Notes: generated from the letters alone by a model not told the origin. Positions 7,934 through 38,218 are shown, numbered from the stretch's first letter. The stretch: DNA of 64,000 bases from Macrostomum lignano (GCA_002269645.1 NIVC01000691.1:62001-126000); one strand, 5' to 3'. Numbers and translations are program-made.

Positions 7934-9835
7934 TCAACCCCAAATATCTAGGCCACTTTCAAAATCCACGTCATAAGAGTTGAACATCGACTCGGAGCCA
8001 CCGAAAGCGCCATCTGCACCCGATCCACCCTTCGAAGGCGTGGTTTTGCCGCACACAGTGCAAAGAACACGCAAACCATTGGAGACGCTGGGCGCAGTTG
8101 GAGACACGGCGGTGCAGTGCGGGCAGGTAAAGTCAACTGAAGTTGAAATCTCCGACAATGTGGGTGACAAATCGCGACGATTAAAATTAAGCTTCGGTTT
8201 ATTGTTTGACGAAAAAAAATCCAGTCGCATGGGACGCTGGGCGAGACCCGGGTTCAAACATTTCGATGGTGCCACTAGAGGCGCAGATGTAGGTCGCTGC
8301 GCTTTGCCCACCTTACTGCTCATAGGGCCAGCCAGAAAGTCCGGCGCACCTACACGGTCCTTCTTCTTGTTGCCACGCATGGCGCTGGCCAGGGCCTCCT
8401 TGAGGTGCGACTCGCACAGACCCGCCTCCACCACCGGCCTCCCGCACTCCCCGTCCTCCAGACCGCCTCCTGACGTCTCCTTCTGCTCCTGGACGCTGCA
8501 CCGACCTCCAGCGCCCGCCACTCCGACAAGCTCCAGCTCAACGCCCCGATCCAGCGCCGTCTGCCGAACCTTCTCCAACGGCCAGTCTCTGAACGTCTCC
8601 ACACACTCCGACCCGTGGTGGCAGTGCAGTCCCTTGTTCCCGCCGCAGCACTCCTGTCGAACAAACAGACTGCCGCAGTCGCTGCAGAACTCCGCCTTGC
8701 ACTGCCTGCACGTCAGGTGAAGACAGCCGCCTCGAGACAGCTCGAACTGGAAGCCGCACTTTGGACACGAGCTGCCCCGACTCTCCAGGAACTGCGCCAG
8801 TCCGCGCTCGCTCAAGTCCGTCTGCTGACGCCACTCGCCGAACTGCTGGCAGCTCACGCCTCGGTGCCGCTCGTGCCACGCCTTGCCGCACTTCCTGCAC
8901 GTCTCCTTGCCGCAGTGCGGACACCGCACCTGTCTGTCGTGGTGCTCCGACACCTCGAAACCGTTCGAGCACCCGCTGCACCAGCAGAAGTTGTCCGTCA
9001 GCTTCAGTCGCCAGTCGCGCAGTCTCTCATCCAGCTTCTTCATCACTACGGGCTTTAGCTTGCCCGCCAACAACCTCTGCAGCAGCGGAAAGTACTCGCA
9101 CGACGTGTCCGTCAGAGCTCGGTCGTCCAGCTTGTCGCACACCGGACACGTCAGCACCGACACCGAGCTGTCGTGCATCAGGCGCACCTCGATCTGCTGG
9201 CACAGACAGTCGCTGCAGACCTCGCAGCCGCACAGGGGAACCTCGACCAGCTTCTTGTCGTCGATGCACACTGGGCAATCTTTGCTAGCAGTAGTTTCCA
9301 TTGGAGCTGCTTTAGAGTTTCGAATAGAAATAGCTCTGAGCGGTCGAATTTGATCCCACTGCAGCACACCTTCAGTAGCCCTGTGAGTAGGGTAAAACGG
9401 CTTCAAACTCCTAGTGAAAATGTCATTCGCTTCTACAGCACCTGGGTCCCGCTCTTCGCCTATGCATCTTCGAAGACCCAATGTGCTGCTTGTCTCGCTC
9501 ATCCGGGTCCTCGAAAATCGCTGAGACATACTAATGCTCAAAGGTTCGGCTGCTGCATCCGTTTCGGCGTCTCGCAAACTCCACGAAGCACGGGATTCAT
9601 CGTCAAAGCTTTGCCTGTGCTGTTGGTTTTTACGAGGCTTTGGCTTGGGTGCCCGCTCAAGATGCTGTGCTCTCTGCTGTCGCTGGTGCAGATCCAGAAG
9701 CTCCTCACAAGAGACTGACTTGGAACACACGCTGCAGATGATGCGGCTTTTAGGATTTGAAGTGTCGCACATGGCCGAGTTGATAAATGTGCAGTGCTGG
9801 CACTGCCACTCAATGTTTTGGCTAGCTGATGCCAT
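7934..9835 (-). CDS. RNF31-like: HOIP-like RBR E3 ligase, divergent type B (NZF, RBR, truncated LDD, C-terminal NZF)
   Basis: First in-frame ATG at 9835 (MASASQNIEWQCQHCTFIN); CPVC-x-RING1, IBR, CPKCGFQFELSRGGCLHLTC, FRDW, VQEQKE..DGECG..LCESH; C-terminal FTCPHCT...LCTVCGK. Confidence 0.85.
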   Translation of the reverse strand: MASASQNIEWQCQHCTFINSAMCDTSNPKSRIICSVCSKSVSCEELLDLHQRQQRAQHLERAPKPKPRKNQQHRQSFDDESRASWSLRDAETDAAAEPLSISMSQRFSRTRMSETSSTLGLRRCIGEERDPGAVEANDIFTRSLKPFYPTHRATEGVLQWDQIRPLRAISIRNSKAAPMETTASKDCPVCIDDKKLVEVPLCGCEVCSDCLCQQIEVRLMHDSSVSVLTCPVCDKLDDRALTDTSCEYFPLLQRLLAGKLKPVVMKKLDERLRDWRLKLTDNFCWCSGCSNGFEVSEHHDRQVRCPHCGKETCRKCGKAWHERHRGVSCQQFGEWRQQTDLSERGLAQFLESRGSSCPKCGFQFELSRGGCLHLTCRQCKAEFCSDCGSLFVRQECCGGNKGLHCHHGSECVETFRDWPLEKVRQTALDRGVELELVGVAGAGGRCSVQEQKETSGGGLEDGECGRPVVEAGLCESHLKEALASAMRGNKKKDRVGAPDFLAGPMSSKVGKAQRPTSAPLVAPSKCLNPGLAQRPMRLDFFSSNNKPKLNFNRRDLSPTLSEISTSVDFTCPHCTAVSPTAPSVSNGLRVLCTVCGKTTPSKGGSGADGAFGGSESMFNSYDVDFESGLDIWG

Positions 9836-11856
9836 GCGATTTGGTGCTGCAAGCTTGCAAACCTTTGCTGCAAGGAGTTTATTTAAACAAAATTTAGTCA
9901 ACTTTGAACTAAAAGGATAATCAGTTTGAGAAAACAATGTTGGAAAGCTTGCAATATAAATTTCTAAGACTTAGGAGGAACTCAAAAATATCATAGTAAT
10001 GTAATATAATATAGGTAAATAGTATCCTATACTACTCATGTTAGATATATATCATAAGAGCGATTAGATTATGTATATTTTTTCAATAAACATCCGCCCC
10101 ATATGCTCTTTTAGTAGTAAAATTAGCGCTTTCAGCTGTTATCTAATTCAATAGAGAGTGGCATATACAGTGACTTTAGCAGCTCGTAGTAGTACCAGTG
10201 GCCTCTACCATTAGCTAAATATTTTCGTTAACTTTACTATGTAAAACTTATAAAGAAAAAAACGATTTGAGACTCGCAATGCAATGCGAAGGCAATTTAA
10301 ATCTCAAAAGTATATTTTATAAAAATATTTTAAGCCATCTTGTTAAAAATACCGCTGTTGACTTAAAAAAAATCAATTATTGTAGCAAAATATGAACTAG
10401 GATAAAAATAATTGGACAATAAATTTGATTGGCCTAATTTGGAAACTTTTAAGAAACGTATCAACAGTGAGCATACCGGTATACAGGTACACACTTAAGG
10501 TGGAAACTTATGAAGGCGAAGACATAATTCTAATTCTAGACAAATTGGATTTTGAAAAAAAACTTTAAACAAATCAAGAATTTAATACTAAAATCATTAA
10601 GGCTGATTAACATTATCATAGAATGAGCAATCAAGTCGCACTATCGATGTAAAAAGGAATGAAAGCTGCTGTAGGAGTTACGAGCGTAACCACACGAAAT
10701 TGGACCTTTATTTGATTTGATGTCAGTGTAAACAACACTTTGCCTCTTTTGACGAACACACTTAAGAAAACTTTATTTACTAGCAGTCGAAAAATAGTGT
10801 CACGAAAATTTCCTGCAAACAACTGCGTGTAGTGACGATTGAAAGTTTTCAAAATACACTACAAATCGATTGAGCATCAATTGATTGCTTGTTTAAGCTA
10901 ATTCATTTTACTGCCATATTTCATAGAACAAGCTTAAAATCAACTAATTGTCTACGCAGTAAATTGACTCAAATGTAATTAACTGTGTACCTGCAAATGT
11001 CATGCGACACAAAAAAGAAAGGACATCAAAACAACGAGAAACAAATACAAAATGGAAATATATAATAAAAATACTAAACGATGCTTTTTACACGTGCTTT
11101 CTTTGATTTCTTTCTAGCAAGCAGTTTCTGCCTACACTGCTCACTTTGGCAAGTGGCTTTTATCTACTTGTCGAAACTTGTCTCTGACAATGCTCTTAGT
11201 GCTTGAGCAGCTAGAATGCATTGTGCGCTGAAACTTACAAGAAAATATTTTTTTAATTAAGACAAAAATTCGGCCGCAAGTGACGCCCGCCCCTCGGCCC
11301 TCGCCCATACAGCGAAGACGGGGTGAAAGGCCCCTGGCTAGAGGAAGGGGCAGATAAAACGCACGCAAAGTACTCGTACACAGAGTGCACAAAGCTGTCC
11401 CAGAGAGAGCAAAGTGACTCATAATAAAACACACATATGCTTTGCCTACGGTAGTGTAATCAAAATTCTTCCTCGAGAAATCTACACTACCGCCTATCGA
11501 TCAAAAAAGTAAGTGACAATGCGCTAGTATGCAAAATTAAAGTATACAAGGGCTATAAACAGAGAAAAAGTAAAAAACCATCAACGATTCATCACTTGCA
11601 TAAAATCAAAAAGAGTCAGAAGTTATTGAACATAAAAAATTCACAAGACTTCTCACAAAAATCAGCAAAATACATGTTGTTTTAACAAAATTATGAAACA
11701 TTTTAAAACAATAATTTGAACACATACTCGAGACGAGCATTTCAGATTTTGTAACATGGCAATTTAAAAACAAAAGTTAAAGCCGCGAAGGAATGAATAG
11801 CTCGACTAACTGTTTTGTTCATCAACTTTCTACATTTACACCATGGCTTCTTTTTC

Positions 11857-14800
11857 TTAGATACCCCACAGCGGTGGCACCATGTCCTTCAGCCGTTCGC
11901 GGTAAACTTTCATCTTCTCTCTCGCAGCAGAGAGAGAAGGGTTGGAGGCTTTGACTTGTGGCAGGGCCAAACGAAACCTTCTAAACATCTCCAGCAGCTC
12001 ATTCTCATTGGCAACATCTACCAAATCGAGTTTGTTTGCATTGATGAGCTGAATTAGATACTCACGGTAGTGCCTGTCACATATACCTGGCTTGTTATGA
12101 GTAACTTTTTCGGTACAAGGACAGACTGTCAGCTTTCCGTCCATCTTCAAATCAGGAAGCTCACAAGCTTTGCCAACATTTAAGCATGCTTCGCTCACTT
12201 TTACCTTATTTCCCCTCAGCAAATCAAGAAAGGTCGTCTGTTTTACTTGCTTCAAATTAAAGTAGCACTGGCGTTGGTGGTGCACATGAAATCCCTTAAA
12301 CGGGCAGCCTTCGTGAGGTCTCTTCTGAGGGCTTCGACAAAATGGACAGAATGAATGCCCACATCTGCAGTGAAACACAGAATATCCTGATTTGGACACT
12401 CGTTGGTAGCAAAGACTGCAGTTTGGGCAAACCAAATCAAAAGTCAGAAGCTCCATCATCTGATCGTGCAGGTTTGCGTCAGTAGGCGAGAAGCCTTGCT
12501 TCTGAGCAGCTGTGTGCATTTCGTTATAATCTTCTTTTTGTTGAATACCTGCTGCATAATCCCGATAACTGCTGCAGTTTATCCGTTGGTGATCAACCCA
12601 GAAGCCGAAGCATTTCTTGCAGACATCCTGTTTGCAAACTTTGCAGTAACTTTCGCACTGTCGAGTGTCCATTTTCGGTAGTCCACCATTCCTATGAGGA
12701 CAATAGCCATTCGAAGTGTTTACTGCAACTGTCGAGGCATCTTTAGAGGCTTTTGATTTTGTCCCTTTCTTGCCTGCGGCTTCGACCACTTCCCAACCCT
12801 CGTCGCTTTTTTTGCTTGAATTTTCTTCAAGGTGCGCCACTGCATACTCCACAGTGTCAGAGCCAAGCACATCTGCCATTTCCATCAGTTGCATCTTCAT
12901 GAAATCCCGACTATCTTCATCATCGCATACACCCTGGCAGGCAGGGCACTGAATTCTGCTGCTTTTTAGATCAACAAGAAATTTCTTAAAGCACTCTGGA
13001 CACATCTGGCACTCGCATACTGCCATGGCAACAAGTTTGTGACGTGGTAAATCATTCGAACAGCGGTTGCACTTGCGACGCAGTTGGCTCATCAGAGCAT
13101 CGTCTTCGAACGCCAAGTCGCCACACGACTCAATCGCAACTACAAGGTCTGATTCGGAAAACTCTTTAAACTTAGGCATACTTTTGACAACCAGAATTCT
13201 CTCTGCTACCCAGTTTTCTACTCTGAGCTGCAAAGCCAGGTTTTGAGCTTTATCGGACCATTCGGTAGAATCGCTTCCTGCCGCTCCGACTGCAGCACTG
13301 GCGGCTGATGTGGCTGCGGAGGTCAGCATGGACGCAGCAGCAGCGGCTTCACTGCGAGCGACTGCGCCTCCTTTAGTGGCGCCACCAATGAGTTTGGTAA
13401 TGTATGTGCAAGCAGAGCAAATTCCAAGCCCAGTTTCTGGCTGCGATGGAGCCGGGTTCACCAGCGTGCAGTGATTGCAGATCCAGCTGCCTTTGCTTTG
13501 AGAATTGTTTTCTTGGAAATTTTGAGAGGTTACATTTGAAAGAACATTCGTTGTATGATGTCCATGTAGTTGCCGATTCTGTTCTTGCTGTTTCTCTCTC
13601 TGCTGCTGCTCTCTCTGCTGCTGCTCTCTCTGCTGTTGCTCTCTCTGCTGCTGCTCTCTCTGCTGTTGCTCTCTCTGCTGCTGCTCTCTCTGCTGTTGCT
13701 CTCTCTGCTTTCGCTCTCTCTGCTGTTGCTCTCTCTGCTGTTGCTCTCTCTGCTGTTGCTCTGTCTTCTGTAGCTCTCTCAGCTGGTCTCTCAGCTGTTC
13801 TTCTCTCTCCTGTTGCTCTCTCTGCAGCTGTTTCTCTCTCTGCTGCTGCTCTCTCTGCTGTTGCTCTTTCTGCTGCTGCTCTCTCTGCTGCTGCTCTCTT
13901 TGCTGTTGCTCTCTCTGCTGCTGCTGTCTCTGCTGTTGCTCTCTCTGCTTTCGCTCTGTCTTCTGTAGCTCTCTCAGCTGGTCTCTCAGCTGTTCTTCTC
14001 TCTCCTGTTGCTCTCTCTGCAGCTGTTTCTCTCTCTGCTGCTGCTCTCTCTGCTGTTGCTCTTTCTGCTGCTGCTCTCTCTGCTGCTGCTCTCTTTGCTG
14101 TTGCTCTCTCTGCTGCTGCTCTCTCTGCTGTTGCTCTCTCTGCTTTCGCTCTGTCTTCTGTAGCTCTCTCAGCTGGTCTCTCAGCTGTTCTTCTCTCTCC
14201 TGTTGCTCTCTCTGCAGCTGTTTCTCCCTCTGCTGCTGCTCTCTCTGCTGTTGCTCTTTCTGCTGCTGCTCTCTCTGCTGTTGCTCTCTCTGCTGTTGCT
14301 CTCTCAGCTGGTCTCTCAGCTGTTCTTCTCTCTCCTGTTGCTCTTTCAGCTGGTATCTCAGTTGTTCTTCTCTCTCCTGCTGCTCTCTCAGCTGGTCTCT
14401 CAGCTGTTCTTCTCTCTCCTGTTGCTCTCTCAGCTGGTCTCTCAGCTGTTCTCTCAGCTGTTCTTCTTTCTCTTGTTGCTCTCTCAGCTGGTCTCTCAGC
14501 TGTTCTTCTCTCTCCTGTTGCTCTCTCTGGTGCTGGTCGCTCTGTTGCTGCTCCAACATCTGCAGCAGTCTCGCCGCCTCATCATTACCTAGATGAGACT
14601 CCAGTTCGTACACAAGAATCATGGTCGTGTTTCGAGCTACGTGGTCTCCAGACCAGGCCACTCCGCACACCGGACACTCCAGCTGCCCCGGCATTCCGGA
14701 CAGGAAGCTGCAGAAACAGCCACAGCACAGCTCGCACTCGCACGTCGCCATGTGAAACAGCTTGTGACGCGGCATCTGCTTTGAGCACTGGCAACACTGG

Positions 14801-15126
14801 CTTCTCAGGTGCGCCAACAGAGCTACCACATCATCACAGGCCTTCTCGCAAGACTGGATGGAGTCAATGAGGTCAGTATCGGAGAAGTCCTTGAACTCCC
14901 TGAGCTGCTTCACTTCCTGGAGTCGCTCGGTCAGCCAGGTGTCGCAGCGACGCTGGGCCTGAGGCGGCGGCGGCAGCACCTCGACTCGGTGATTCTCAAC
15001 GCTGTGCCAGTTGGTGTGGCAGGACTCGCAGATCAGTTGGAAGCCGCAGCCGGCCTCCAGGCACCGGATTGAGGCGCCTGGGCGGCTGCAGATGAGGCAG
15101 CGCTCAGCAAACATTCGGTGAGCCAT
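11857..15126 (-). CDS. RNF31-like: HOIP-like RBR protein with duplicated UBA-like/RING1 unit, QRE coiled coil and substituted active site (predicted pseudo-ligase)
   Basis: ATG at 15126. Order: B-box-like, RING1 copy 1, QRE repeat, NZF, RING1 copy 2, IBR, RING2 (CPNC..SKSGYSVFHC), LDD (ICDRHYREYLIQLINANKLD). Confidence 0.85.
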   Translation of the reverse strand: MAHRMFAERCLICSRPGASIRCLEAGCGFQLICESCHTNWHSVENHRVEVLPPPPQAQRRCDTWLTERLQEVKQLREFKDFSDTDLIDSIQSCEKACDDVVALLAHLRSQCCQCSKQMPRHKLFHMATCECELCCGCFCSFLSGMPGQLECPVCGVAWSGDHVARNTTMILVYELESHLGNDEAARLLQMLEQQQSDQHQREQQEREEQLRDQLREQQEKEEQLREQLRDQLREQQEREEQLRDQLREQQEREEQLRYQLKEQQEREEQLRDQLREQQQREQQQREQQQKEQQQREQQQREKQLQREQQEREEQLRDQLRELQKTERKQREQQQREQQQREQQQREQQQREQQQKEQQQREQQQREKQLQREQQEREEQLRDQLRELQKTERKQREQQQRQQQQREQQQREQQQREQQQKEQQQREQQQREKQLQREQQEREEQLRDQLRELQKTEQQQREQQQREQQQRERKQREQQQREQQQREQQQREQQQREQQQREQQQREQQQREKQQEQNRQLHGHHTTNVLSNVTSQNFQENNSQSKGSWICNHCTLVNPAPSQPETGLGICSACTYITKLIGGATKGGAVARSEAAAAASMLTSAATSAASAAVGAAGSDSTEWSDKAQNLALQLRVENWVAERILVVKSMPKFKEFSESDLVVAIESCGDLAFEDDALMSQLRRKCNRCSNDLPRHKLVAMAVCECQMCPECFKKFLVDLKSSRIQCPACQGVCDDEDSRDFMKMQLMEMADVLGSDTVEYAVAHLEENSSKKSDEGWEVVEAAGKKGTKSKASKDASTVAVNTSNGYCPHRNGGLPKMDTRQCESYCKVCKQDVCKKCFGFWVDHQRINCSSYRDYAAGIQQKEDYNEMHTAAQKQGFSPTDANLHDQMMELLTFDLVCPNCSLCYQRVSKSGYSVFHCRCGHSFCPFCRSPQKRPHEGCPFKGFHVHHQRQCYFNLKQVKQTTFLDLLRGNKVKVSEACLNVGKACELPDLKMDGKLTVCPCTEKVTHNKPGICDRHYREYLIQLINANKLDLVDVANENELLEMFRRFRLALPQVKASNPSLSAAREKMKVYRERLKDMVPPLWGI
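13585..14530 (-). repeat. Coding QQQRE/QLRE tandem repeat with a 195-bp higher-order unit
   Basis: 15-bp GAGAGAGCAGCAGCA-type units; the marker ttctctctcctgttgctctctctgcagctg recurs at 13801, 13996 and 14191. Confidence 0.9.
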
Positions 15127-16479
15127 GCGTTGCACAACCAAGTTTGCTTGTTGGTCAGGAGCGCTGCATGCATTGAAATAGGGTAGAAGCTTTAAACTCA
15201 ATCAAGAGCAACTGTGGATTGACAAGTTTGAGTAATCTAGCTACGAGAGCATAAACTAAAGAGAAACATTTCAGAGAGTCATTTTTGGAGGGTTTCAAAA
15301 AAATATTCAGATGGGGTGTTGCTTGCTAGGCGATATTGTGAAGAACTAAAAAGCTAAGAATCATTATTAAAGTCAATAAAATATTTCAACGCATTTAGCA
15401 CTTTGAGATGACTTGTCGAGTTTATTTGGCAACGAAAAAGAACAAAGTTTTGGTATTCCCACTGGGAAAACCAAAGTCAGCTGGTTACCCTAAAGGCTAA
15501 GGAGCACCGGTTTAAACCATCTGCTATACAAAATCATCTCATTCAGTATGATACGGTAAGTGCTGTAGTTGTCAACCAGAAAAGTGCTTTAAAAAATCTA
15601 CAAATGCCAATTAGACTACAGACTCACTAATCATTAAAGTTCTGCCTAAGCTCGCCTAGCCTCAACACCCAGCCCTAGCACAGTGGCGCAGGTCACGTCC
15701 TCCGTATTATCTGAGAGTTGCACTACTGTATTCGTGCCTGTCCATGCTTTTAACCTGTTAATGTGCATTGATTGTTTTCTACCTTTACCAAAACTATTGA
15801 TTTTTCACGACTGTTTCATTACGATTTAGTTTTTTAAAAACTGAGTTTTGATACCGCATCACACAGTGAACCATAATTTGAAGTTGAGAAAAGAACAAAA
15901 ACAAAAACGTTTCGTACCTTATAAATTAACACTTCAGCAAAACGCTTTAACAGCAAAACATTAAAATCTGGAGTATCTTAATAATGAAAAACAAAGACTA
16001 TATGGATACAGCACAGCTATCTTTGTCTTGAATCATACATTTAAATTTAAGGTAAATATCACGTTTATAAAATATAATACCATTGTATAAAATCACAGAG
16101 AATATTTTGGTATATTCTGTGTTGAAAAACGGAATAATTGAACTTTTTGTTTACAAAAACAACTCAGCATTGAATCACTCAAATTTGGTTGGAACAAATC
16201 CATCACATTTCTCAATGCAGTGTTGGAAGCCCTGTACTCGACAGGAGTTCTAGTCGAGTCCTGCGTAGACTGTAGGCCTTCCCTAGATTTCGATCTGAAA
16301 GGGTGAAGTTTTTCGCGCTAAGAAACATTGTTTTACTCTACATGACACAATTAAATAAAACTTCTATGGTGTAATCTATTGTCCGCCCTACTCGTCAAGT
16401 TGCTATACAGCAACAATCAATGAAAATGCATAATCAAACAAAAGCTGAGGATACGACCAGCCAATAATAGGAAGCAGTG

Positions 16480-17388: not shown

Positions 17389-17728
17389 CTAACCTGCATC
17401 TACGGCACCATCAGTTGCTGCTAGATCGCGAACCTCCACCCTGAACGACCGGCCCATTGTTACATTGCCAAAGCCAAATGTTAACAAATGAACTCCCGGC
17501 ATTTTCGGAGTAAAACTGCAGAGGTATTTCACTTTGCCTTCGGAGGCTGCAATTCTGAATCGAACTGGCACTTGAGCACCGTCACTTTCAACGCCTTCCG
17601 GTACGAGACGGAAAAATGGTTGGCTTCCATCAACACCGATTTTTAGGATTAGAAGTGTCGCACATAGCCGAGTTGATAAATGTGCAGTGCTGGCATTGCC
17701 ACTCAAGATTTAGTCTAACGAATTCCAT
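17389..17728 (-). pseudogene. Half-NZF start copied from the 7934-9835 gene, joined to a filamin-type Ig repeat fragment with a 1-bp frameshift
   Basis: MEFVRLNLEWQCQHCTFINSAMCDTSNPK (ATG 17728, stop 17630), then in the next frame ...YLCSFTPKMPGVHLLTFGFGNVTMGRSFRVEV (filamin-like). Confidence 0.55.
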
Positions 17729-18330
17729 ACGATTTGGTGCCGCAAGCCTGCAGGCCTTTGCTGCAAGGAGTTCATTTAAACAAAATTGAGCTAACTTTGA
17801 ATTAAAAAGGTTATCAGTGAGAAAAAATGTTGGAAAGTATTTAATTATAAATATCTAAATAGTAATTAAGTAAAATCTAGCCATATAATATCACACTCAT
17901 TAAAAGTAAATTCTATTAGCTTATAAATATTTTCCCACTGAAAATGCGCCCAATGTACGAGTATATCTTTTCTTTCAGTACTAAAATTAGCTTTTTTCTG
18001 CTGTTATCTAATTCAATAGCGAGCGGCATATGTTGTGATTTTAACAGCTTCTAACACCCGTGGCTATTACCACTAGCTAAATGTTTTCATAAATTTACTA
18101 AGTAATACTTAAAAAGAAGAAAAACGATTTGAGACTCGCAATGAAATGCGTAGACAATAGAAAGTCTAAATAGTATATTTTATAAATCTTGTAAAAAACA
18201 CAGTTGTTTAATCGAAAAATATCGATGATTGTAGAACCATGTAAACTAGGATAAAAATGATTGGACAATAATTTCGATTGGTTTAGTTTGGAGCCGATTA
18301 AGAAACGGACAAAAAGTGAGCACATAAACT
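17640..18330. repeat. Segmental duplicate of ~9750-10480 (5' end and upstream region of the type-B RBR gene)
   Basis: Shared blocks such as agtgtcgcac..gccgagttgataaatgtgcagtgctggca, ctgttatctaattcaatag and aacgatttgagactcgcaatg occur in both places in the same order. Confidence 0.8.
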
Positions 18331-18493
18331 CAGCAACCTGTTAAAAGCTTCCACTCCGAAACCAGTGGTCAAGTTTTCATAGGTCTCAGTCACTTCTCAG
18401 CCAGTTCGCCTCACCCACAAGGCCCTGGATGAGATGCGAGTATATCAGTATGCCAGGACCGCTGCTGACGCCAGAGCAAGTCTCCAGTGCCAA

Positions 18494-18846
18494 CTATCAT
18501 GAGCGCTAATTAACGTCTTCAGCTACTGTCTCCACCGCTAACTGTCTTCATCGCTTATGTCTCCACCGCTAACTGTCTTCATCGCTTATGTCTCCACCGC
18601 TAACTGTCTGCATCGCTTATGTCTCCACCGCTAATGTCAGCAGAGTAATTTACTGCTATTGACATTAAGGGATTTTAATTACATGTATTACTTTCAAACC
18701 AATTGCCGACATAAGGATTTTAACTTTTGTTAGTGTTATACGAGAAAAAGGATTGTAACAAATATAAAATACAAAACTCACTAAGATTTTGTGAAAGAAT
18801 AAGGCGCTGGAGACAGTAGCGGTGATGTCAATGGCGCTCATGACAG
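18494..18846. mobile_element. MITE-like element with ~43-bp imperfect TIRs and an internal 31-bp tandem repeat
   Basis: ctatcatgagcgc...gctactgtctccaccgc at 18494 is the inverse of gcgctggagacagtagc...gcgctcatgacag ending at 18846; TGTCTCCACCGCTAACTGTCTTCATCGCTTA x~3.5 at 18527-18633. Confidence 0.5.
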
Positions 18847-20272
18847 TAAGCGCTTGCGCTGGTGAAGCCTAGTGAGCAATAACTGAAGAATTATGGCTAG
18901 AGCTGGATTATTTAAGTTGCCACTTGTTGACCACTGGTTTAAGAAAGTTAAGGAGCCGAATGAAAAACAGCTGATAACACTTGTGTAAAGAATCGAAACT
19001 AGTACGAAAGAAAGAAGTTCGGTAAAGTCCATAGATTATAAAAACAGTGTTTTAGTATCTGTGTTTAAGTCAGAGGTCTAGTCAGACGAAAAAGAAGCAC
19101 AAAAAGTTTTTGGTAACTTTAATCACAGTCTCAAATGGCAATAAAATCTTAACAAAATAGCCGAATGTGGACACATTGGAACAAATTTAAATTAAGGCAC
19201 GATAAAATGGACCATTGGTTAGAATTGGATACTGATTATAAGAATTGAAAATAAAAAAATAAAGACCTGTTTTCTACTGCCGAAAAAGTTTCCTGGGATA
19301 TCAAATAAACATGAACAATTAAATATTAAAAAAATTAATTCACAGAACCGGGAATAATTTTGAGGATTTTTTCTTCGAGTGGTTTTCAGATTGTATCCTC
19401 GTATTAGAATTTGACTCATTTGTTCTGTTAATACGAGGTAACAGGGTGTGAAAAATCAAGTTCAAAGTATTTGAAACGATATTGGCCAATTAGTGACAAT
19501 TTTTTAGTTTTAGTTATTTTTTTAACTAACTAATAAATCAATCCATTATCAGTAGAATTACCAGGAACACATGCTTTTACCACCAAAAAACATTTATTGC
19601 TGCGCAGTAAGGAGCAACGCAGGCACCATAGAGACCCTGTTGCAAATTTCTCTAGTTTCGTTGATCAAGCCTAGACAGTGGGTAAACCTCAACTGCTGGA
19701 CATCCTCAGCTAGTTTTTCCAATCATTCCCGTCCAGAGTCACCTGATGTTACCTTTTGAAGGTCCAGAAGCTACGCCTGTGTGAAGGCCAGTGACCAACG
19801 AAGTCAAAGCTGATGCAGACACATGTGGTCGCCGTGCTGATAAAATTTGGAGGCTTGGAAAGGCTGCACTAAAAAGTAGTGCTTATTGGCGCACAGGGGA
19901 GCATTGAATACGCCCGTACAATAGCGCTAAAGGGAAAAATCCGATCTTCTACGAGTAGCAGGATCGTCGAGTATCTCGACGGTCCAGAATGCTGGTGACT
20001 TAATTGTTGTTTAAAAAGTTGCGCCGCAAAAAGTTAGCCCGTGTTTCTTGAATTTAGTGTGCCTGCGTTGCTCCGTTCCGGTGCAGCAAAAAATTATCAG
20101 GCGGGATTCCCCCGTTGATAGTTCGACGGGTGGAAAAATAGCTCGGTATTCTTACTGTTAATTAAAACTATGAGCTTAAGTTGATACAGAGTAATCCTAT
20201 CACGAAAATATCTGATCGGAAAATAGGGAGCGTCTCTAAAAATAATTATTAGGAGAGTACCGCCATGGTGAG

Positions 20273-23200
20273 TCACTTTACAAGTGGCTGCTGCTGAGCA
20301 ATCAAAGCTCGCAGGGCTGCCACTTTGTTCTCGCCGACTCCCGAGCAGTCAATTCCTTCACGCAGACACGCTCCCCTGAGCTCGCCTTCGTCCATCACAC
20401 TGACGGGATCCAGCTTTTGCTTGTTCACCAGCGATACAAGGTACTCAATGTAGTGCTTCTCGCACAGGTTCGCCTGGCCCGGTTTCACGTCGACACCGCA
20501 CGGCTCATCCTTCAAACCGCTTCCAACTTCCTTTTGCTCCATCACTTCGCATTTGTCAACTGAGTTCTCAGCTTCGCTCTCGAACTCCACCTTGTGTAAA
20601 TTCAGCAGCAGCTGGAGCCGGTCCACTCCAAAGTCTCTTAGATAGAACAGACAGTCTCTCGGGTGTTTGCAACTCAGGCCCCTGCCCTGAATGATTGTAT
20701 ACTCGCCATCACAGCCTGCGCAGAATTGAAAGCGGCACATTCGGCAGGTGAAGTGCAGACAGCCACCCTTTGCTAAGGCATATTGAAAGCGACAATTAGG
20801 GCACTCAATGCCATTGGCTTGTAGAAAAAATCCAACACCTTTCTCCTGATATTCTGGATCATTGTATTTTAGCCAAATCTCAAACAGGTCACAGTCAATG
20901 TCCTCATGCTGATCTTTCCACGGCTTTTTGCACTCTTTGCAGGTAAAGGCCTGACAATTAGGACATTGGAACTTCAAGCCGATCATGATCTCTGCAAGTA
21001 AAATTTCAAAGCCACAGCTGCTGCACCTGCACCATCGATAGTTTGGATCTTGAAAAAAATTCCACTCTGTGATCTTCTTCTCGACAAGATCCAAAACGTT
21101 TTTATCAAATTTATATTCAGATTGTTTAAAGCGGATGTCATTGATCTGTTGCAGAAGCATTTTGAAATGGCTCTCCAGCTTTTCTATTTGATTTGGATCC
21201 GGAACTTGACAGATTGGGCAACAAAGATCTGTGACATGCCCGCCACCTGTCATAGCTGTTGTCACGAAGTTACGAAAGCACTCGTGGCACAACTCGCACT
21301 GACATGAAGCCATAGGCAATAACTTGTGTCTTGGAAACTCTCCACCACAGCAACTGCACTCGCACCCCAAGAAACTTTTCACGAAGTCAACGTAATCCCG
21401 CCTGTTATTGCTGCTCTTCGCAGCCTCCGCTAGGTCATAAAGATCGCGGCCCTTAAACTCGCTGTTTTGCATAAGCTGAAAAAGTATTTTAGCATCGCTA
21501 ATCTTTCTTAAGTCGAACTCTCCCATCAGACAGTGGAGGGAGGTCTCACTTTCATTCATTCTGTCGAACTTAGGTGGCTCCTGGCCCTCCTTGCGGAACA
21601 AAAATTGTGCGAAATCTCTAAAGACCCGTTCGTTTTCGGCTTGATAAAAATTAGTAAAATCACCATCGCCCTGAAAATCAAGGTTCACCTCATGGGCTGA
21701 CTGCAGCAACTCTGGGCAGTTCTCCGCAATCCAAGCGACCTTTGCTTTGTGACGCTGGGCGCAAATCTGAATAGCCGCTTCAAGGTCGCATGTGTTGTCC
21801 AGCACAGCAGATGCGATATCGTCAAATGAGGGTCGCACACCTGCATTATCATCCTGCAGCACTTTCGCTACCTCGCAACCGACCTGCTCAATCAGTGCCG
21901 GCCATTTTTCTGCGACCCAGACCTTGAATCCAGCCTCCGACTGGGCGCCATCATCAGCAGTTGCCACCAAATACAGCTGGCCCAGCCGACCATCGAAGCC
22001 AGAAAATTCGATATCTTGTATAAGCTTCATCAGCTGTCTGTTTGCAGCCGCCTCCATCTCTGGATTTCGCTGACGGGCTACTGGCTTGACCTCAAAGGGA
22101 AGCTTGATACCGTCACTGCCACCGAGTTCACGTGGAGTTTGGCAAATTGCGCAAGACTTTGCAGTAATGGGATTAAGCATTGTACATGCGGAGCAAGACC
22201 AATCTTGATCATTAGACAGCGGCTGTCTTACGGGTTGAAAAACTTTATTCAAATCATTGTCATAAAGCTGCTCCTCTTTCTGATGTTGCTCCCTCTGATG
22301 ATGCTCTCTCTCAAGTAGCTCTCTTTCACGCTCAATTAGCTCTATCTCACGCTCCTTATCACGCTCTCTCTCCCACTCTCTCTCACGTTGCTCTCTCTGC
22401 TGCTGCTCTCTCTGATTTTGATTTCTTTGCTTTTGCTCTCTCTGCTGCTGCTCCCTCTGGTGTTGCTTTCTCCCAAGTAGCTCTCTCTTACGCTCAAGTA
22501 GCTTTCTCTCACGCTCAATTAGCTCTCTTTCACGCTCAATTAGCTCTATCTCGCGCTCCTTATCACGCTCGCTCTCCCATTCTCTCTCCCGTTGCTCTCT
22601 CTGCTGCTGCTCTATCTCCCGTTGCTCTCTCTGCTGCTGCTCTCTCTGCTGCTGCTCTATCTCCCGTTGCTCTCTCTGCTGCTGCTCTCTCTGCTGCTGC
22701 TCTCTCTGCTGCTGCTCTCTCTTCTGCTGCTGCTCTCTCTTCTGCTGCTGCTCTCTCTTCTGCTGCTCTCTCTGCTGCTGCTCTCTCTCCCGTTGCTCTC
22801 TCTGCTGCTGCTCTCTCTCCCGTTGCTCTCTCTCCCGTTGCTCTCTCTGCTGCTGCTCTATCTCCCGTTGCTCTCTCTCCCGTTGCTCTCTCTGCTGCTG
22901 CTCTCTCTGCTGCTGCTCTCTCTGCTGCTGCTCTCTCTGCTGCTGCTCTCTCTGCTGCTGCTCTCTCTGCTGCTGCTCTCTCTGCTGCTGCTCTCTCTGC
23001 TGCTGCTCTCTCTTCTGCTGCTCTCTCTGCTGCTGCTCTCTCTGCTGCTGCTCTCTCTGCTGCTGCTCTCTCTGCTGCTGCTCTCTCTTCTGCTGCTCTC
23101 TCTGCTGCTCAAAAAAATCATTTGCTTTATTTAGAACTTCAAATTGACCTCGCTGATTCAAGTGCAAAAACAAATTCTGCTGCTCTCTCAGCTTCTTCTT

Positions 23201-24250
23201 GTTGCCTTGCATGGCGCTGACCAGGGCCTCTTTGAGGTGCGACTCGCACAGACCCGCCTTGACCACTGGCCTCCCGCACTCCCCGTCCTCCAGACCGCCT
23301 CCTGACGTCTCCTTCTGCTCCTGGACGCTGCACCGACCTCCAGTGCCCGCCACTCCGACAAGCTCCAGCTGAACGCCCCGCTCCAGCGCCGTCTGCCGAA
23401 CCTTCTCCAACGGCCAGTCTCTGAACGTCTCCACGCACTCCGACCCGTGGTGGCAGTGGAGTCCCTTGTTACCGCCGCAGCACTCCTGTCGAACAAACAG
23501 ACTGCCGCAGTCGCTGCAGAACTCCGCCTTGCACTGCCTGCACGTCAGGTGAAGACAGCCGCCTCGAGACAGCTCGAACTGGAAGCCGCACTTTGGACAC
23601 GAGCTGCCCCGACTCTCCAGGAACTGCGCCAGTCCGCGCTCGCTCAAGTCCGTCTGCTGACGCCACTCGCCGAACTTCTGGCAGCTCACGCCTCGGTGCC
23701 GCTCGTGCCACGCCTTGCCGCACTTCCTGCACGTCTCCTTGCCGCAGTGCGGGCACCGCACCTGCCTGTCGTGGTGCTCCGACACCTCGAAACCGTTCGA
23801 GCACCCGCTGCACCAGCAGAAGTTGTCCGTCAGCTTCAGTCGCCAGTCGCGCAGTCTCTCATCAAGCTTCTTCATCACTGCGGGCTTCAGCTGGCCCGCC
23901 AGCAGCCTCCGAAGCAGCGGAAAGTACTCGCACGACGTGTCCGTCAGAGCTCGGTCGTCCAGCTTGTCGCACACCGGACACGTCAGCACCGACACCGAGC
24001 TGTCGTTCATCAGGCGCACCTCGATCTGCTGGCACAGACAGTCGCTGCAGACCTCGCAGCCGCACAGGGGAACCTCGACCAGCTTCTTCTCGTCGATGCA
24101 CACCGGGCACTCTGCTGATGTCTGCAGCTCTGAGAGGTCAGTGGATTTTCCGCACACTGAGCAGATCAGCCTTCTGTGCAGTTGGCGACTCAGTGCTACA
24201 TTATTGATGAAGGCACAACACGGACACTGCCACTGCGATAGGCGTGGCAT
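20273..24250 (-). CDS. RNF31-like: Chimeric double-RBR HOIP-like E3 ligase, 1325 aa (NZF, type-B RBR, QRE coil, NZF, UBA, type-A RBR-LDD)
   Basis: Single ORF with two complete RING1-IBR-RING2 units: FELSRGGCLHLTC and YALAKGGCLHFTC...HPRDCLFYLRD...LCEKHYIEYLVSLVN..LDP. Confidence 0.88.
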   Translation of the reverse strand: MPRLSQWQCPCCAFINNVALSRQLHRRLICSVCGKSTDLSELQTSAECPVCIDEKKLVEVPLCGCEVCSDCLCQQIEVRLMNDSSVSVLTCPVCDKLDDRALTDTSCEYFPLLRRLLAGQLKPAVMKKLDERLRDWRLKLTDNFCWCSGCSNGFEVSEHHDRQVRCPHCGKETCRKCGKAWHERHRGVSCQKFGEWRQQTDLSERGLAQFLESRGSSCPKCGFQFELSRGGCLHLTCRQCKAEFCSDCGSLFVRQECCGGNKGLHCHHGSECVETFRDWPLEKVRQTALERGVQLELVGVAGTGGRCSVQEQKETSGGGLEDGECGRPVVKAGLCESHLKEALVSAMQGNKKKLREQQNLFLHLNQRGQFEVLNKANDFFEQQREQQKREQQQREQQQREQQQREQQQREQQKREQQQREQQQREQQQREQQQREQQQREQQQREQQQREQQQREQREREQREIEQQQREQREREQREREQQQREQREREQQQREQQKREQQQKREQQQKREQQQREQQQREQQQREQREIEQQQREQQQREQREIEQQQREQREREWESERDKEREIELIERERELIERERKLLERKRELLGRKQHQREQQQREQKQRNQNQREQQQREQREREWERERDKEREIELIERERELLEREHHQREQHQKEEQLYDNDLNKVFQPVRQPLSNDQDWSCSACTMLNPITAKSCAICQTPRELGGSDGIKLPFEVKPVARQRNPEMEAAANRQLMKLIQDIEFSGFDGRLGQLYLVATADDGAQSEAGFKVWVAEKWPALIEQVGCEVAKVLQDDNAGVRPSFDDIASAVLDNTCDLEAAIQICAQRHKAKVAWIAENCPELLQSAHEVNLDFQGDGDFTNFYQAENERVFRDFAQFLFRKEGQEPPKFDRMNESETSLHCLMGEFDLRKISDAKILFQLMQNSEFKGRDLYDLAEAAKSSNNRRDYVDFVKSFLGCECSCCGGEFPRHKLLPMASCQCELCHECFRNFVTTAMTGGGHVTDLCCPICQVPDPNQIEKLESHFKMLLQQINDIRFKQSEYKFDKNVLDLVEKKITEWNFFQDPNYRWCRCSSCGFEILLAEIMIGLKFQCPNCQAFTCKECKKPWKDQHEDIDCDLFEIWLKYNDPEYQEKGVGFFLQANGIECPNCRFQYALAKGGCLHFTCRMCRFQFCAGCDGEYTIIQGRGLSCKHPRDCLFYLRDFGVDRLQLLLNLHKVEFESEAENSVDKCEVMEQKEVGSGLKDEPCGVDVKPGQANLCEKHYIEYLVSLVNKQKLDPVSVMDEGELRGACLREGIDCSGVGENKVAALRALIAQQQPLVK
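22290..23110 (-). repeat. Coding QQQRE/ERE repeat
   Basis: Runs of ctctctctgctgctg on the plus strand, inside ORF 20273-24250. Confidence 0.9.
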
Positions 24251-25024: not shown

Positions 25025-25390
25025 CAGGCAGGAGGTTGTGTGCACCCTGGCGCACTTTAAGCGACATTGTCACACAACCGGCAAGAGGCATTACTGCCCA
25101 TTACGCCGACTCCCCTGAGCAGGCGCACAAGCGCGCGGATACGTACGCAGTCATACGCACAGGCACACACTCACACAGGAGTGTACAGCGGCCCTGACTT
25201 TATTTATCGTTAGGCATGTACACTTCACTGTGCCCTGGGGGTTGGCCCTCAAGGTGGGCGTTAATTGCACGAGCAGAGCCAAGCTGAGATTCCAATTTAG
25301 CCCCAAATTAATGCGACTGCATTTGGAATCGAGCCTGGACCGCTGGCACATTAGAGCGCCGCGCTGGACCACTGGACTGCGGGTCCTCTC
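25025..25390 (-). mobile_element. SINE family B, copy 2
   Basis: Reverse complement of 2902-3270 (gtgcaccctggcgcactttaagcgacattgtc...ggaatcgagcctgg). Confidence 0.75.
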
Positions 25391-25898
25391 TAAAACAGCC
25401 AGGTTACTAGGCCATAGGACTAGGGCAAATTGTTGATACACTGACAAATGGAACGCTTTTTCCCCAGCTATTGGTTTTATAATTAAATTAATATCTATAT
25501 GAATTGCACGGCACTAAATGAAGCACACGTTTTTTTGCCTTTGCGGCTAATTTAGAATTAAACTAAGTCATCTAACGCTTACGTCTGACAACACATGATA
25601 AAACTAGTAATCATTTTAATAGAAATGCTAGGCTGAGCATTAAACATAATGTTTAATAAAAATCTAATAATTTGACTAAAATATATCGCAGTATTTGCAT
25701 TCACGTGTGGAGACAATTTGATGAGATTGGAGAGAAAAAAATGCTAGATTAAATACATTAGACTCCTGGAGAGATTGGTTAAAAGTCAGTCTGCATTAGA
25801 TAAGGATATTGAGTAATTAGAAGCTAAATACTTGCATAATACAATTGGAACAATTCAAAAGTATTTTATTCAACATTGCCGTCTACATTCTGTGCGAT

Positions 25899-28133
25899 CT
25901 AATTCTGTTGTTGATAGTGGTAAGATTTTAGATTCTGTTGAGTCGCATTTATTGGCTGAAACGGGCTCGTGAACTGCTGCATTCTTGAGCTCATGCTCTG
26001 CATTGGCGGTACTGGTGAGTTCATGCTCTGCATTGGCTGCATTCTTGAGTTCATGCTCTGCATTGGCGGTACTGGTGAGTTCATGCTCTGCATTGGCGGT
26101 ACTGGTGAGTTCATGCTCTGCATTGGCGGTACTGGTGAGTTCATGCTCTGCATTGGCTGCATTCTTGAGTTCATGCTCTGCATTGGCGGTACTTGTAAGT
26201 TCATGCTCTGCATTGGCGGTACTGGTGAGTTCATGCTCTGCATTGGCGGTACTGGTGAGTTCATGCTCTGCATTGGCTGCATTGAGTTCATGCTCTGCAT
26301 TGGCTGCATTGAGTTCATGCTCTGCATTGGCTGCATTGAGTTCATGCTCTGCATTGGCTGCATTGAGTTCATGCTCTGCATTGGCTGCATTGAGTTCATG
26401 CTCTGCATTGGCTGCATTGAGTTCATGCTCTGCATTGGCTGCATTGAGTTCATGCTCTGCATTGGCTGCATTGAGTTCAAGCTCTGCATTGGCTGCATTG
26501 AGTTCATGCTCTGCATTGGCTGTCTGTAATGCGACGGTCTCAAGCTCTGATTCGGCAGCAGAGGCGGTGGAGGCCGAGCGAACCAGTTAGTCACAGAAGG
26601 TATGGAAGTCCTGACTGCCTGCAACGCTGTTGTGCCACCTCCAGGCCTTTGATTCGAGGTCACAGAAGCGGCAGCTGCTGGTGAGTCGCACATCTCACAG
26701 CTGGCAGGCGAACCGGATTCAACGTTGACCGGCGAGTTGACATTGTGGCACAGGCTGCAGATCCACGGCTGCTGCGGAGCGGCCTCCTGCGGCGTAGAAG
26801 TCGGCAGTAACGGCGGAGGCAGGAGCGTCATCATTTCAATGAGCATCGGAGTGAGCTTGAACTCCACTGGACTGGATGCGGCAGGGGCGGCGGCGGCGGT
26901 GACTGCCTGCTTGACTTTCCTGCCACGCATGGCGCTGGCCAGGGCCTCCTTGAGGTGCGACTCGCACAGACCCGACTCGACGACCGGCCTCCCGCACTCC
27001 CCGTCCTCCAGACCGCCTCCTGATGTCTCCTTCTGCTCCTGGATGCTGCACCGACCTCCAGCGACCGCCACTCCGACAAGCTCCAGCTGAACGCCCCGCT
27101 CCAGCGCCGTCTGCCGAACCTTCTCCAACGGCCAGTCTCTGAACGTCTCCACGCACTCCGACCCGTGGTGGCAGTGGAGTCCCTTGTTCCCGCCGCAGCA
27201 CTCCTGTCGAACAAACAGACTGCCGCAGTCGCTGCAGAACTCCGCCTTGCACTGCCTGCACGTCAGGTGAAGACAGCCGCCTCGAGACAGCTCGAACTGG
27301 AAGCCGCACTTTGGACACGAGCTGCCCCGACTCTCCAGGAACTGCGCCAGTCCGCGCTCGCTCAAGTCCGTCTGCTGACGCCACTCGCCGAACTGCTGGC
27401 AGCTCACGCCTCGGTGCCGCTCGTGCCACGCCTTGCCGCACTTCCTGCACGTCTCCTTGCCGCAGTGCGGACACCGGATCGCCAACTCCTCGACGTTGTC
27501 GTCAACTTCAAAGCCGAATGCGCAGCCGCTGCACCACATGAAGTTGCGGCTTCGCTCCAGACGCCAGTCGCGCAGTCTGTCGTCGAGCTGCTGCATCAGG
27601 TCGCGGCTGAGCCGGCCCGCTAGCAGACTCCGCAGCTGGGGAAAGTACTCACAGCTGGGATCGGCCAGGGTGTCCGAATCTGGCCGGCTGCAAACCGGAC
27701 AAGCAAGCCGGTCAGCCGAGCCGTGACTGCGCAAGCTGACTCGGACGAATCTACACAGACAGTCGCTGCAGAGCCGACAGCCGCACAGAGGGACTGTCAG
27801 AAGTGTTAGCTGCGACTCCAGGCACAGCGGACAGTCGCCACAGTCGGAGTAATCGGCAACCGCAGTCGGTGCAGCGTGGGGAACGCCAACGGGCTCGCTA
27901 GATTTGCCGCAGACTTCGCAGATGAGTCGACTGGAACCGGCGGTGCGACGCGTCTCAGCCAGCTGATTCTCGTAGGTGCAGTGACGGCAGCGCCAAGTGG
28001 CAGCGCTGCTGCTGTTCTTCTTGACAGTTGCCTTGTTTTTATGACTTTTTTGTTTTTGTTTTTCATTCTGATGCAGCTGGAATGAGGCTGAATGATTGCC
28101 TCTACGTTTGGAGCTGCTGACGCTCGATGTGGC
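25899..28133 (-). CDS. RNF31-like: HOIP-like type-B RBR E3 ligase with C-terminal NZF and PMQSMNS repeat tail; start probably in an unidentified upstream exon
   Basis: WRCRHCTYEN..LICEVCGK (NZF), RING1, IBR, FELSRGGCLHLTC, WICSLCHNVN (NZF). No in-frame ATG upstream of the domains; candidate acceptor TTATTCCAG|GCC at 28133. Confidence 0.8.
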   Translation of the reverse strand, partial: ATSSVSSSKRRGNHSASFQLHQNEKQKQKSHKNKATVKKNSSSAATWRCRHCTYENQLAETRRTAGSSRLICEVCGKSSEPVGVPHAAPTAVADYSDCGDCPLCLESQLTLLTVPLCGCRLCSDCLCRFVRVSLRSHGSADRLACPVCSRPDSDTLADPSCEYFPQLRSLLAGRLSRDLMQQLDDRLRDWRLERSRNFMWCSGCAFGFEVDDNVEELAIRCPHCGKETCRKCGKAWHERHRGVSCQQFGEWRQQTDLSERGLAQFLESRGSSCPKCGFQFELSRGGCLHLTCRQCKAEFCSDCGSLFVRQECCGGNKGLHCHHGSECVETFRDWPLEKVRQTALERGVQLELVGVAVAGGRCSIQEQKETSGGGLEDGECGRPVVESGLCESHLKEALASAMRGRKVKQAVTAAAAPAASSPVEFKLTPMLIEMMTLLPPPLLPTSTPQEAAPQQPWICSLCHNVNSPVNVESGSPASCEMCDSPAAAASVTSNQRPGGGTTALQAVRTSIPSVTNWFARPPPPLLPNQSLRPSHYRQPMQSMNSMQPMQSLNSMQPMQSMNSMQPMQSMNSMQPMQSMNSMQPMQSMNSMQPMQSMNSMQPMQSMNSMQPMQSMNSMQPMQSMNSPVPPMQSMNSPVPPMQSMNLQVPPMQSMNSRMQPMQSMNSPVPPMQSMNSPVPPMQSMNSPVPPMQSMNSRMQPMQSMNSPVPPMQSMSSRMQQFTSPFQPINATQQNLKSYHYQQQN
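25975..26520 (-). repeat. Coding minisatellite: 27-bp (PMQSMNSMQ) and 33-bp (PMQSMNSPVPP) units
   Basis: gagttcatgctctgcattggc repeated about 19 times with two alternative spacers. Confidence 0.9.

Positions 28134-37968: not shown

Positions 37969-38218
<250 letters not shown>

Follow-up and report, generated by a model that had tools for sequence, protein, structure and literature searches.

A HOIP-derived catalytic cassette lacking the end of its LDD, homogenized between paralogs and joined to differing heads and tails in Macrostomum lignano

HOIP, the product of RNF31, is the catalytic RBR-LDD ligase of LUBAC (linear ubiquitin chain assembly complex), which is assembled and regulated through PUB and UBA domains, and to our knowledge it is a single conserved gene in well-studied animals. 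Tandem gene families such as the opsin, globin, KIR, and NLR clusters are homogenized by gene conversion and unequal crossover, which also yield hybrid genes, and in TRIM5-CypA (TRIMCyp), which arose by cDNA retrotransposition, an E3 scaffold was retained while its C-terminal recognition domain was replaced. Here we describe a 64,000-nt stretch of the genome of Macrostomum lignano, hereafter the window, in which domain matches identify at least seven HOIP/RNF31-derived genes for RBR E3 ubiquitin ligases, clustered in tandem within 35 kb. Three of these genes share a catalytic block, the type-B cassette, and we consider it probable that the LDD of this cassette was truncated once, that the cassette is now a block homogenized by gene conversion, and that exchange inside it swaps the heads and tails of the genes that carry it.

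Like HOIP/RNF31 of vertebrates and LUBEL of Drosophila, the type-B proteins combine RING1-IBR-RING2 with the HOIP-specific LDD (the "helical base"), a catalytic Cys-x-His, and the RDW motif, and they contain NZF zinc fingers within the same proteins; a further gene of the same cluster, g30601, matches the full layout of HOIP, down to the HOIP UBA pair. Unlike HOIP, the type-B proteins are without the last ~55–60 residues of the LDD and have no PUB or UBA domain, they are multicopy products of a tandem array with unrelated C-terminal tails, and in some copies a QQREQ (QRE) coiled coil fuses them, within a single open reading frame (ORF), to another RBR-LDD that is complete. Their nearest relatives outside Macrostomum are HOIP/LUBEL orthologs with at most 41% identity. 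The cassette is, as far as sequence comparison can tell, a descendant of HOIP/RNF31/LUBEL, and by analogy it may work in the same way. Within human LUBAC it is the HOIP subunit that sets the specificity for Met1-linked (linear) chains, and this specificity comes from the LDD (PMC3463842).

The cluster resembles the opsin, globin, KIR, and NLR clusters in that identity between paralogs exceeds that of their flanks, silent sites are homogenized, tract ends are sharp, and copy number and hybrid genes vary between haplotypes or homeologs. It differs from them in that the homogenized unit is a single catalytic domain in otherwise unrelated genes, and exchange would therefore give new domain architectures, including two-enzyme fusions. 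As in TRIMCyp, the E3 catalytic or scaffold part is retained and the C-terminal part is exchanged for an unrelated domain; unlike in TRIMCyp, swapping tracks the homology between paralogs of a tandem array, and the tails are at most putative recognition domains. Gene conversion and nonallelic homologous recombination are themselves well known. What appears unusual is the natural truncation of the LDD, the number of HOIP-derived genes, and the ORFs with two RBR modules, and in the literature we found no paper on an expansion of HOIP or RBR genes in Macrostomum or other invertebrates.

The type-B cassette and its relation to HOIP

The window comes from contig NIVC01000691.1 of the M. lignano assembly Mlig_3_7 (GCA_002269645.1), with which it is 100% identical over the 15,719 nt compared; an exact coding sequence for the g4118 protein (5719-4118) lies on that contig. 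All close database relatives of its genes are M. lignano proteins, and through them we reached two sister loci, on contig 110 (L001) and on contig 762 (NIVC01000762.1; L002 and L003), which together with the window (contig 691) make up the three contigs compared here. About 85% of the Mlig_3_7 genome is present in three copies that are ~2.2% different (1.1% in coding sequence) (PMC10733133). The window consists of GC-rich coding blocks with AT-rich spacers between them, and six long intron-free ORFs were found on its minus strand (5719-4118, 9835-7934, 15201-11857, 24250-20273, 28148-25899, and 34143-30601). Five of these six complete genes matched the Pfam models IBR, IBR_1, and PF18091, the last being the HOIP "E3 ubiquitin ligase RBR C-terminal domain," or LDD; the sixth, g11857, gave only a weak zinc-finger match. 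The three type-B genes have the following parts.

7934..9835, minus strand: g7934, 633 aa from the ATG at 9835 (ORF, translation, Pfam, and PDB match)
9835-9282, minus strand: long head of g7934, with an NZF at 9808-9716
9281-8360, minus strand: type-B cassette of g7934, with RING1 from 9277 and the RING2 catalytic motif GGCLHLTC at 8731-8708; PF18091 match of the gene at profile positions 26-72 of 92
8386-8360, minus strand: end of the g7934 cassette (...SAMRGNKKK)
8359-7934, minus strand: tail of g7934, with a CxxC...CxxC zinc ribbon at 8131-8045
20273..24250, minus strand: g20273, a single 1,325-codon ORF with two ligase modules
24250-24114, minus strand: short NZF head of g20273
24113-23192, minus strand: type-B cassette of g20273
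23191-23102, minus strand: pre-QRE linker of g20273, followed by the QQREQ coiled-coil repeat to ~22267
22201-22133, minus strand: NZF of g20273, with a UBA-like region after it; RanBP zinc finger at residues 683-708
21364-20276, minus strand: complete second RBR-LDD of g20273, with the catalytic motif GGCLHFTC at 20767-20744; PF18091 positions 1-92 of 92 matched on residues 1210-1297
25899..28148, minus strand: g25899, with an NZF head at 27995-27900
27833-27482, minus strand: diverged RING1/IBR part of g25899, 62% identical to the other cassettes
27481-26921, minus strand: near-identical tract of g25899 (98.9%)
26909-25899, minus strand: tail of g25899; NZF-like ribbon at 26765-26682, and repeat units of 27 nt (PMQSMNS type) at 26522-25984

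A preliminary description of the window had recorded three blocks that are nearly identical in DNA, and the alignments (self-BLASTN and MAFFT) bear this out. Aligned over 922 nt with no gap, the cassettes of g7934 (9281-8360) and g20273 (24113-23192), both on the minus strand, show 96.96% identity. Between 8371-9100 and 26921-27653 the overall identity is 90.5%, an average that masks an internal step in g25899, which a maximum chi-square scan placed at cassette position 354 (~window 27481; chi2 = 227): compared with the consensus of the eight other copies, g25899 is 61.9% identical upstream of the step and 98.9% identical downstream. The same step was found in the PMQ-tailed genes on all three contigs. 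By these alignments g25899 is homologous across the whole RBR and near-identical in its 3′ 560 nt only, and its near-identical block runs over 27481-26921, where 26918-27478 had been given.

At their 3′ ends the three window copies cease to match within ~12 nt of each other. The cassettes of g7934 and g20273 part right after ...GGCAACAAGAAGAAG (codons ...SAM(R/Q)GNKKK), their shared end being the purine run ...AACAAGAAGAAG, and g25899 departs 11 nt before that point, after ...CGTGGC. Eleven cassettes are present on the three contigs (five on contig 762 and three each on contig 110 and in the window), and all 11 ends fall within ~25 nt, with divergence points at cassette positions ~911, ~922, and ~935. 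The stopping point once described as the same in all three copies is thus a tight cluster under formal pairwise alignment, not a single nucleotide. The 3′ edge of the block coincides with the domain end and its 5′ edge with the first RING1 cysteine.

We read the cassette as the RING1-IBR-RING2-LDD module of HOIP/RNF31 without the last ~55–60 residues of the LDD. Pfam IBR and IBR_1 scored above threshold in all three type-B genes, and in a phmmer search against PDB the cassette aligned to residues 10-316 of 376 of the human HOIP RBR-LDD (6sc5_A; E = 4e-53); because this alignment ends at residue 316, 60 residues are missing. The PF18091 profile was covered over positions 25-75 of 92 in the three type-B copies versus 1-92 in the full-length paralogs of the window, so that the absence of ~50–60 LDD residues reported earlier is confirmed on both counts. 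An alignment with paralogs and three invertebrate orthologs placed the cut right after the helix ...HYKEYLVSLIN(K), and it is the terminal third of the helical base that is absent from the cassette. In an exhaustive HMMER search of 1.84 billion protein representatives, most of the HOIP-like matches listed run ~46–65 residues beyond the aligned end and then stop. Only one representative in this set is more than 50% identical, and the search returned no relative above 50% identity beyond this one cluster. One protein, P0096, ends 4 residues past the cut and was considered as an LDD-truncated relative elsewhere; it lies on a 2-kb contig, where it was probably cut by the contig end, and was rejected.

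The catalytic RING2 residues of human HOIP are C885 and H887, and its LDD or helical base spans residues 910-1072. In the cassette the RING2 Cys-x-His is present, GGCLHLTC aligning with human GGCMHFHC, and the FRDW (R-D) motif and the C...C...CxxH ligands of both LDD zinc fingers are conserved relative to human HOIP and the invertebrate orthologs. In HOIP these zinc fingers and the R-D motif form the acceptor-ubiquitin platform (PMC3940038, PMC3463842). Pfam found no PUB or UBA_HOIP match in g7934, g25899, or the N-terminal half of g20273, and it found UBA_HOIP in g30601. Of the LDD mutants of human HOIP, all that were assayed lacked activity, and constructs without the LDD failed to express (PMC3463842).

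The tails had been described as following three separate cuts. All 11 cassettes share the same truncated LDD, however, and because of this and because no relative above 50% identity occurs outside the cluster, a single ancestral truncation is the economical reading: most simply, the LDD would have been truncated once, in the ancestor of the type-B subfamily.

Tails, heads, and their combinations

Four classes of tail stand behind the 11 cassettes: a zinc ribbon, a filamin-like exon, the QRE coiled coil (with the second ligase), and PMQSMNS repeats. Their junctions are as follows.

Zinc-ribbon tail, three copies: cassette end AAGAAGAAG followed by GACCGTGTAGG
Filamin-like tail, two copies (protein P0003): cassette end AACAAGAAG followed by CCCCGTGTAGGC, then an intron, GTAAGC...CCAG
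QRE coiled-coil tail, three copies: cassette end AAGAAGAAG followed by CTGAGAGAGCAGCAG
PMQSMNS tail, three copies: cassette end GGCAGGAAAGTCAAG followed by CAGGCAG

That the tails differ had been noted, and the alignments agree: in local alignments compared with shuffled sequences, no significant DNA or protein similarity was detected between tail classes (all z < 2.1). Right after the cut the zinc-ribbon and filamin tails have 9 nt in common (CCGTGTAGG) and nothing more. The ribbon in the g7934 tail, a CxxC-x17-CxxC, resembles the N-terminal NZF of the same protein and has no significant Pfam match, and it is therefore not recognized as the NZF it had been called. For g25899, the PMQSMNS repeats of the earlier account were found, whereas the accompanying NZF scores below the Pfam threshold (10.8 bits). 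The filamin-like tail gives a weak Pfam filamin match (E = 0.0037).

Every tail begins in phase 0 after an AAG codon, a pattern that exon shuffling could produce if the cut were an ancient HOIP intron within which tails were exchanged before the intron was lost. Introns are known in this family, and the filamin-tailed gene has one 17 codons past the cut. In HOIP genes of other animals the homologous position nevertheless lies inside an exon, in Lamellibrachia (residue ~510; exon 492-550), Owenia (~1661; exon 1593-1701), and Diadema (~1779; exon 1763-1819), and the M. lignano paralogs with a complete LDD have no intron at the cut, which makes this origin scarcely credible.

The combinations of head and tail differ between contigs. 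Those present are short head with filamin, short head with QRE, long head with zinc ribbon, and long head with QRE. The short NZF head is followed by the filamin-like tail on contigs 110 and 762, where the filamin-like exon is spliced to the short-head cassette, and by the QRE/second-ligase tail in the window. Behind the long head, the QRE tail occurs twice on contig 762, once in an intact ORF and once in an ORF broken after the QRE repeat. The intact fusion (L003 4565-7882, 1,105 codons) consists of a long head, a type-B cassette, a short QRE, an NZF, and a complete RBR-LDD. The cassette of this fusion has a one-codon deletion (CEFPLL), and its second RING2 reads GGSLHFTC, either a catalytic Cys-to-Ser change or a sequencing error. 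The long head of g7934 is 97.6% identical to the head of L3b, a QRE-tailed gene on contig 762, and 91–92% identical to the heads of its positional orthologs, whereas its tail groups with those of the positional orthologs (95.8%). By these comparisons heads and tails are joined in a modular fashion and are still being reassorted. Two further proteins were rejected as natural combinations: P0002 (BOX15_Mlig019423g2; short head, cassette, and g7934 tail) rests on a gene model that spans 11 kb between cassettes, and P0001 (BOX15_Mlig000845g2; internal RBR duplication) on one that jumps 7.6 kb between cassettes. These chimeric NCBI gene models are located at L001 10001-21167 and L003 10001-17646. 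NCBI annotates no gene over g7934 on the contig from which the window comes (L007), and neither the g20273 fusion protein nor P0003 was on record when public assemblies were queried for the exact sequences.

The two-ligase gene of the window owes its second half to a segment that the sister contigs do not have.

17638..23191, minus strand: 5.5-kb window-specific segment; contigs 110 and 762 have 277 nt in its place
18322-17637, minus strand: orphan copy of the g7934 promoter with half an NZF, 73.6% identical to 10473-9748
17636-17389, minus strand: what is left of the filamin-like tail exon, in an out-of-frame join with the orphan promoter/NZF copy (17389..18322)

The segment contains the pre-QRE linker, QRE repeat, NZF, UBA, complete RBR-LDD, and 3′ flank, as well as a diverged g7934 upstream region with its first 30 codons (NZF). 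Its left junction lies exactly at the cassette end, and its right junction is nonhomologous and interrupts the filamin exon midway, out of frame and within no repeat. By its sequence the insertion yields an in-frame two-ligase ORF and an orphaned filamin tail, and it is a recent event. Contig 762 presents its elements in this order too (cassette, QRE, ligase, flank, and next long head), and the simplest reading is therefore that homologous invasion in the cassette was followed by long copying of a paralogous unit and by illegitimate rejoining.

Could the near-identity of the cassettes, the mosaic single-nucleotide polymorphisms (SNPs), and some of the combinations be artefacts of assembling and polishing a three-copy, repeat-rich genome? 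Mlig_3_7 has been judged error-prone, with paralogs collapsed or expanded and 93% of read pairs multi-mapping (PMC10733133), the NCBI models P0001 and P0002 are chimeric, and a PHI (pairwise homoplasy index)-like test found mosaic sites without spatial structure. Against this, the same three cassette genes with copy-specific diagnostic SNPs recur on all three contigs, which answers the earlier doubt about assembly duplications; the step from 62% to 98.9% occurs on three contigs and is not something that polishing can create; the window-specific segment ends at a nonhomologous junction outside repeats; and the fused ORFs remain open for 1,325 and 1,105 codons. The junction between cassette and QRE recurs on contig 762 within the intact 1,105-aa ORF. 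Repeat collapse is thus, on the sequence, not behind the 5.5-kb segment or the cassette–QRE junction, and we regard a general artefact as very doubtful.

A second tract in the window is shared in a similar way. Over ~300 nt, g30601 (32538-32238) and g20273 (22225-21925) are 95–100% identical; a further 280 nt (to 31960 and 21650, respectively) are 82–90% identical, and the remaining C-terminal halves are 53–76% identical. On contig 110 the HOIP gene is g30601-like on the 5′ side and g20273-like on the 3′ side of a 300-nt, 100%-identical tract. These identities mark the NZF2-UBA tract of g30601 and g20273 as a second exchange block. Separately, nothing close to the C-terminal RBR-LDD half of g30601 (30601-31960) or to its 3′ flank (to ~28142) is present on the sister contigs, whose HOIP genes bear a C-terminal half 93% identical to that of g20273.

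Homogenization and proposed exchange within the cassette

Five long-head genes have cassettes that are 97.8–98.9% identical and adjoining heads that are 88–92% identical. At four-fold degenerate sites, summed over 10 nonindependent pairs, the divergence is 39/1,334 (2.9%) in the cassette versus 63/646 (9.8%) in the head. If there had been no exchange, stronger purifying selection on the cassette after plain duplications with the same end points would have to account for its conservation. The cassette is indeed a zinc-rich catalytic domain between heads and tails that look disordered, and amino acid divergence is 2.8% in the cassette and 16% in the head. However, the silent four-fold sites are 3.4 times less diverged in the cassette, and purifying selection at the protein level offers no explanation for this silent-site deficit. 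The variant cassette codons, 26 synonymous and 31 nonsynonymous, do not point to strong constraint, the RING1/IBR half of the PMQ gene is equally catalytic yet 62% identical, and the histories of heads and tails disagree. The silent-site contrast together with the identity step inside one domain largely refutes an account without exchange, which we hold to be highly improbable.

The short and long gene NZF heads are ~55–60% identical in DNA, as estimated by eye from the alignment. The long heads (9835-9282 and orthologs) evolve fast, with amino acid divergence (16%) above that at four-fold silent sites (9.8%), which is suggestive of weak constraint, or else of diversifying selection, on the linker that joins NZF to RING1.

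Within the cassette, the four-gamete test was failed by 92 of 253 informative site pairs, and the PMQ copy on contig 762 has lost the PMQ-diagnostic alleles at ~733–850 and carries the alleles of neighboring paralogs there instead. Reading these observations as homogenization with exchange, we envisage the type-B genes as old paralogs, as their diverged NZF heads, unalignable tails, and the 62% identity of the PMQ gene in RING1 would suggest, whose ~0.9-kb catalytic cores would be held ~97–99% identical by nonreciprocal transfer (gene conversion). Because the core is the sole long near-identical stretch, homologous exchanges, by unequal crossover or by one-ended invasion with long copying, would begin and resolve within it, and 5′ heads and 3′ tails would be reassorted as a result. 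The cut would appear common to all copies because the block edge is inherited and marks the end of homology.

The preliminary description had instead placed a recombination hotspot at the cassette end, with repeated independent breaks adding new tails. Four unrelated tails do start within ~25 nt, and the cassette end is exactly where the left junction of the 5.5-kb segment falls. A purine run closes the cassette, and in the seventh gene of the cluster the pre-QRE linker contains a 9/10 microhomology, GCAAYAAGAA, ~12 nt before the homology to the QRE tail. Yet there are three divergence positions, not one; homologous invasion inside a block of homology would equally leave a junction at its edge; the occurrence of the same tails with different heads requires exchange within or 5′ of the cassette; and the NZF2-UBA block acts alike without any truncation. 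A hotspot is not required by these data, in which the identity step, the converted tract, and the silent-site contrast all point inside the cassette, and we think it unlikely. What endures of the earlier proposal is the notion of modular ligases with swappable tails, now extended by combinations that differ across contigs and by heads that swap too.

Several observations count against homogenization with exchange inside the cassette. Homologous exchange reshuffles junctions without creating them, and at least two to three illegitimate joins close together are still needed. Every combination of head and tail is supplied by one draft assembly. The PHI-like neighbor-permutation test was not significant in the cassette (p = 0.58 and 0.26) and gave no spatial structure. 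Fifteen informative sites are copy-specific and common across contigs, from which it follows that the paralogs predate the split of the three genome copies and that homogenization is incomplete and not very recent; a further two sites are common only to paralogs on the same contig, and another twelve conform to neither of these patterns. With 93% of read pairs multi-mapping, some of the mosaic SNPs may be short-read polishing artefacts of the PacBio assembly; polishing does not account for the identity step, the silent-site contrast, or the structural differences. As to the start of four tails within 25 nt, the unconstrained linkers of old paralogs may have diverged beyond recognition, and joins may have been favored by selection where the last retained helix ends. 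Microhomology may contribute as well, the cassette end GGCAACAAGAAG resembling AGCAATAAGAAT in the seventh gene, a sequence located just upstream of the point at which that gene becomes homologous to the QRE tail.

Neighboring genes, repeats, and implications

The remaining members of the cluster are the following.

30601..34143, minus strand: g30601, with the canonical HOIP layout of two NZFs (RanBP-type zinc fingers), HOIP UBA pair, RBR, and complete LDD (Pfam)
11857..15201, minus strand: g11857, likely ATG at 15126, with an N-terminal zinc finger and a UBA-like and RING1 duplicate
14553-13586, minus strand: QRE repeat of g11857, followed by an NZF and a C-terminal RBR-LDD-like half
4118..5719, minus strand: g4118, a short HOIP-like ligase of 533 aa with a complete LDD, which served as a yardstick for the truncation
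1..1020, minus strand: 5′ part of a seventh family member, with a B-box-like zinc finger, NZF, linker, and QRE repeat, running off the window

The C-terminal RING2 of g11857 reads SKSGYSVFHC (12396-12367) where the other genes have GGC(L/M)HFTC, so the catalytic Cys is absent from this degenerate RBR-LDD, and the gene likely encodes a pseudo-ligase. Its N terminus repeats the UBA-like and RING1 part of its own C-terminal half, ahead of the QRE repeat. In the seventh gene, the pre-QRE linker (...NSLLDVKNQQGQFQGQDRANDSYEQQ) shares homology with g20273 over the first 30 residues of its QRE tail.

Satellites abound in the right half of the window (37971-51584 and 57493-63994). It includes (CTAT)x515 at 41007-43068, (GATA)x103 in inverted orientation at 46124-46534, a minisatellite of 21-nt period that lies at 47017-48122 and again, inverted, at 63061-63994, and further arrays with periods of 22, 23, 10, 11, and 12/20 nt; the long "ORFs" in this half are probably repeat artefacts. 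A dispersed repeat of ~330–370 nt with 86–89% identity, probably a small transposable element, occurs at 2901-3269, 25026-25389 (inverted), and 56646-56976 (inverted) as well as on contigs 110 and 762. One of its copies lies between g25899 and g20273, at no junction.

A more far-reaching possibility, which we rate as quite unlikely, is that the cluster is a system of combinatorial E3 diversification, in which the cassette is kept as a portable recombination handle and a repertoire of E3s that differ in their recognition tails and include expressed two-headed enzymes is generated and maintained across the three subgenomes. If this were true, truncated and complete linear-chain modules would act on one substrate and might build, for example, mixed or branched chains in innate immunity. 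Apart from that possibility, the type-B genes are natural variants for asking what the last third of the LDD adds to activity and chain type and how an RBR core tolerates new neighbors, and the locus offers a clear and recent case of a conserved domain that appears to serve as a homology handle for domain shuffling between neopolyploid subgenomes.

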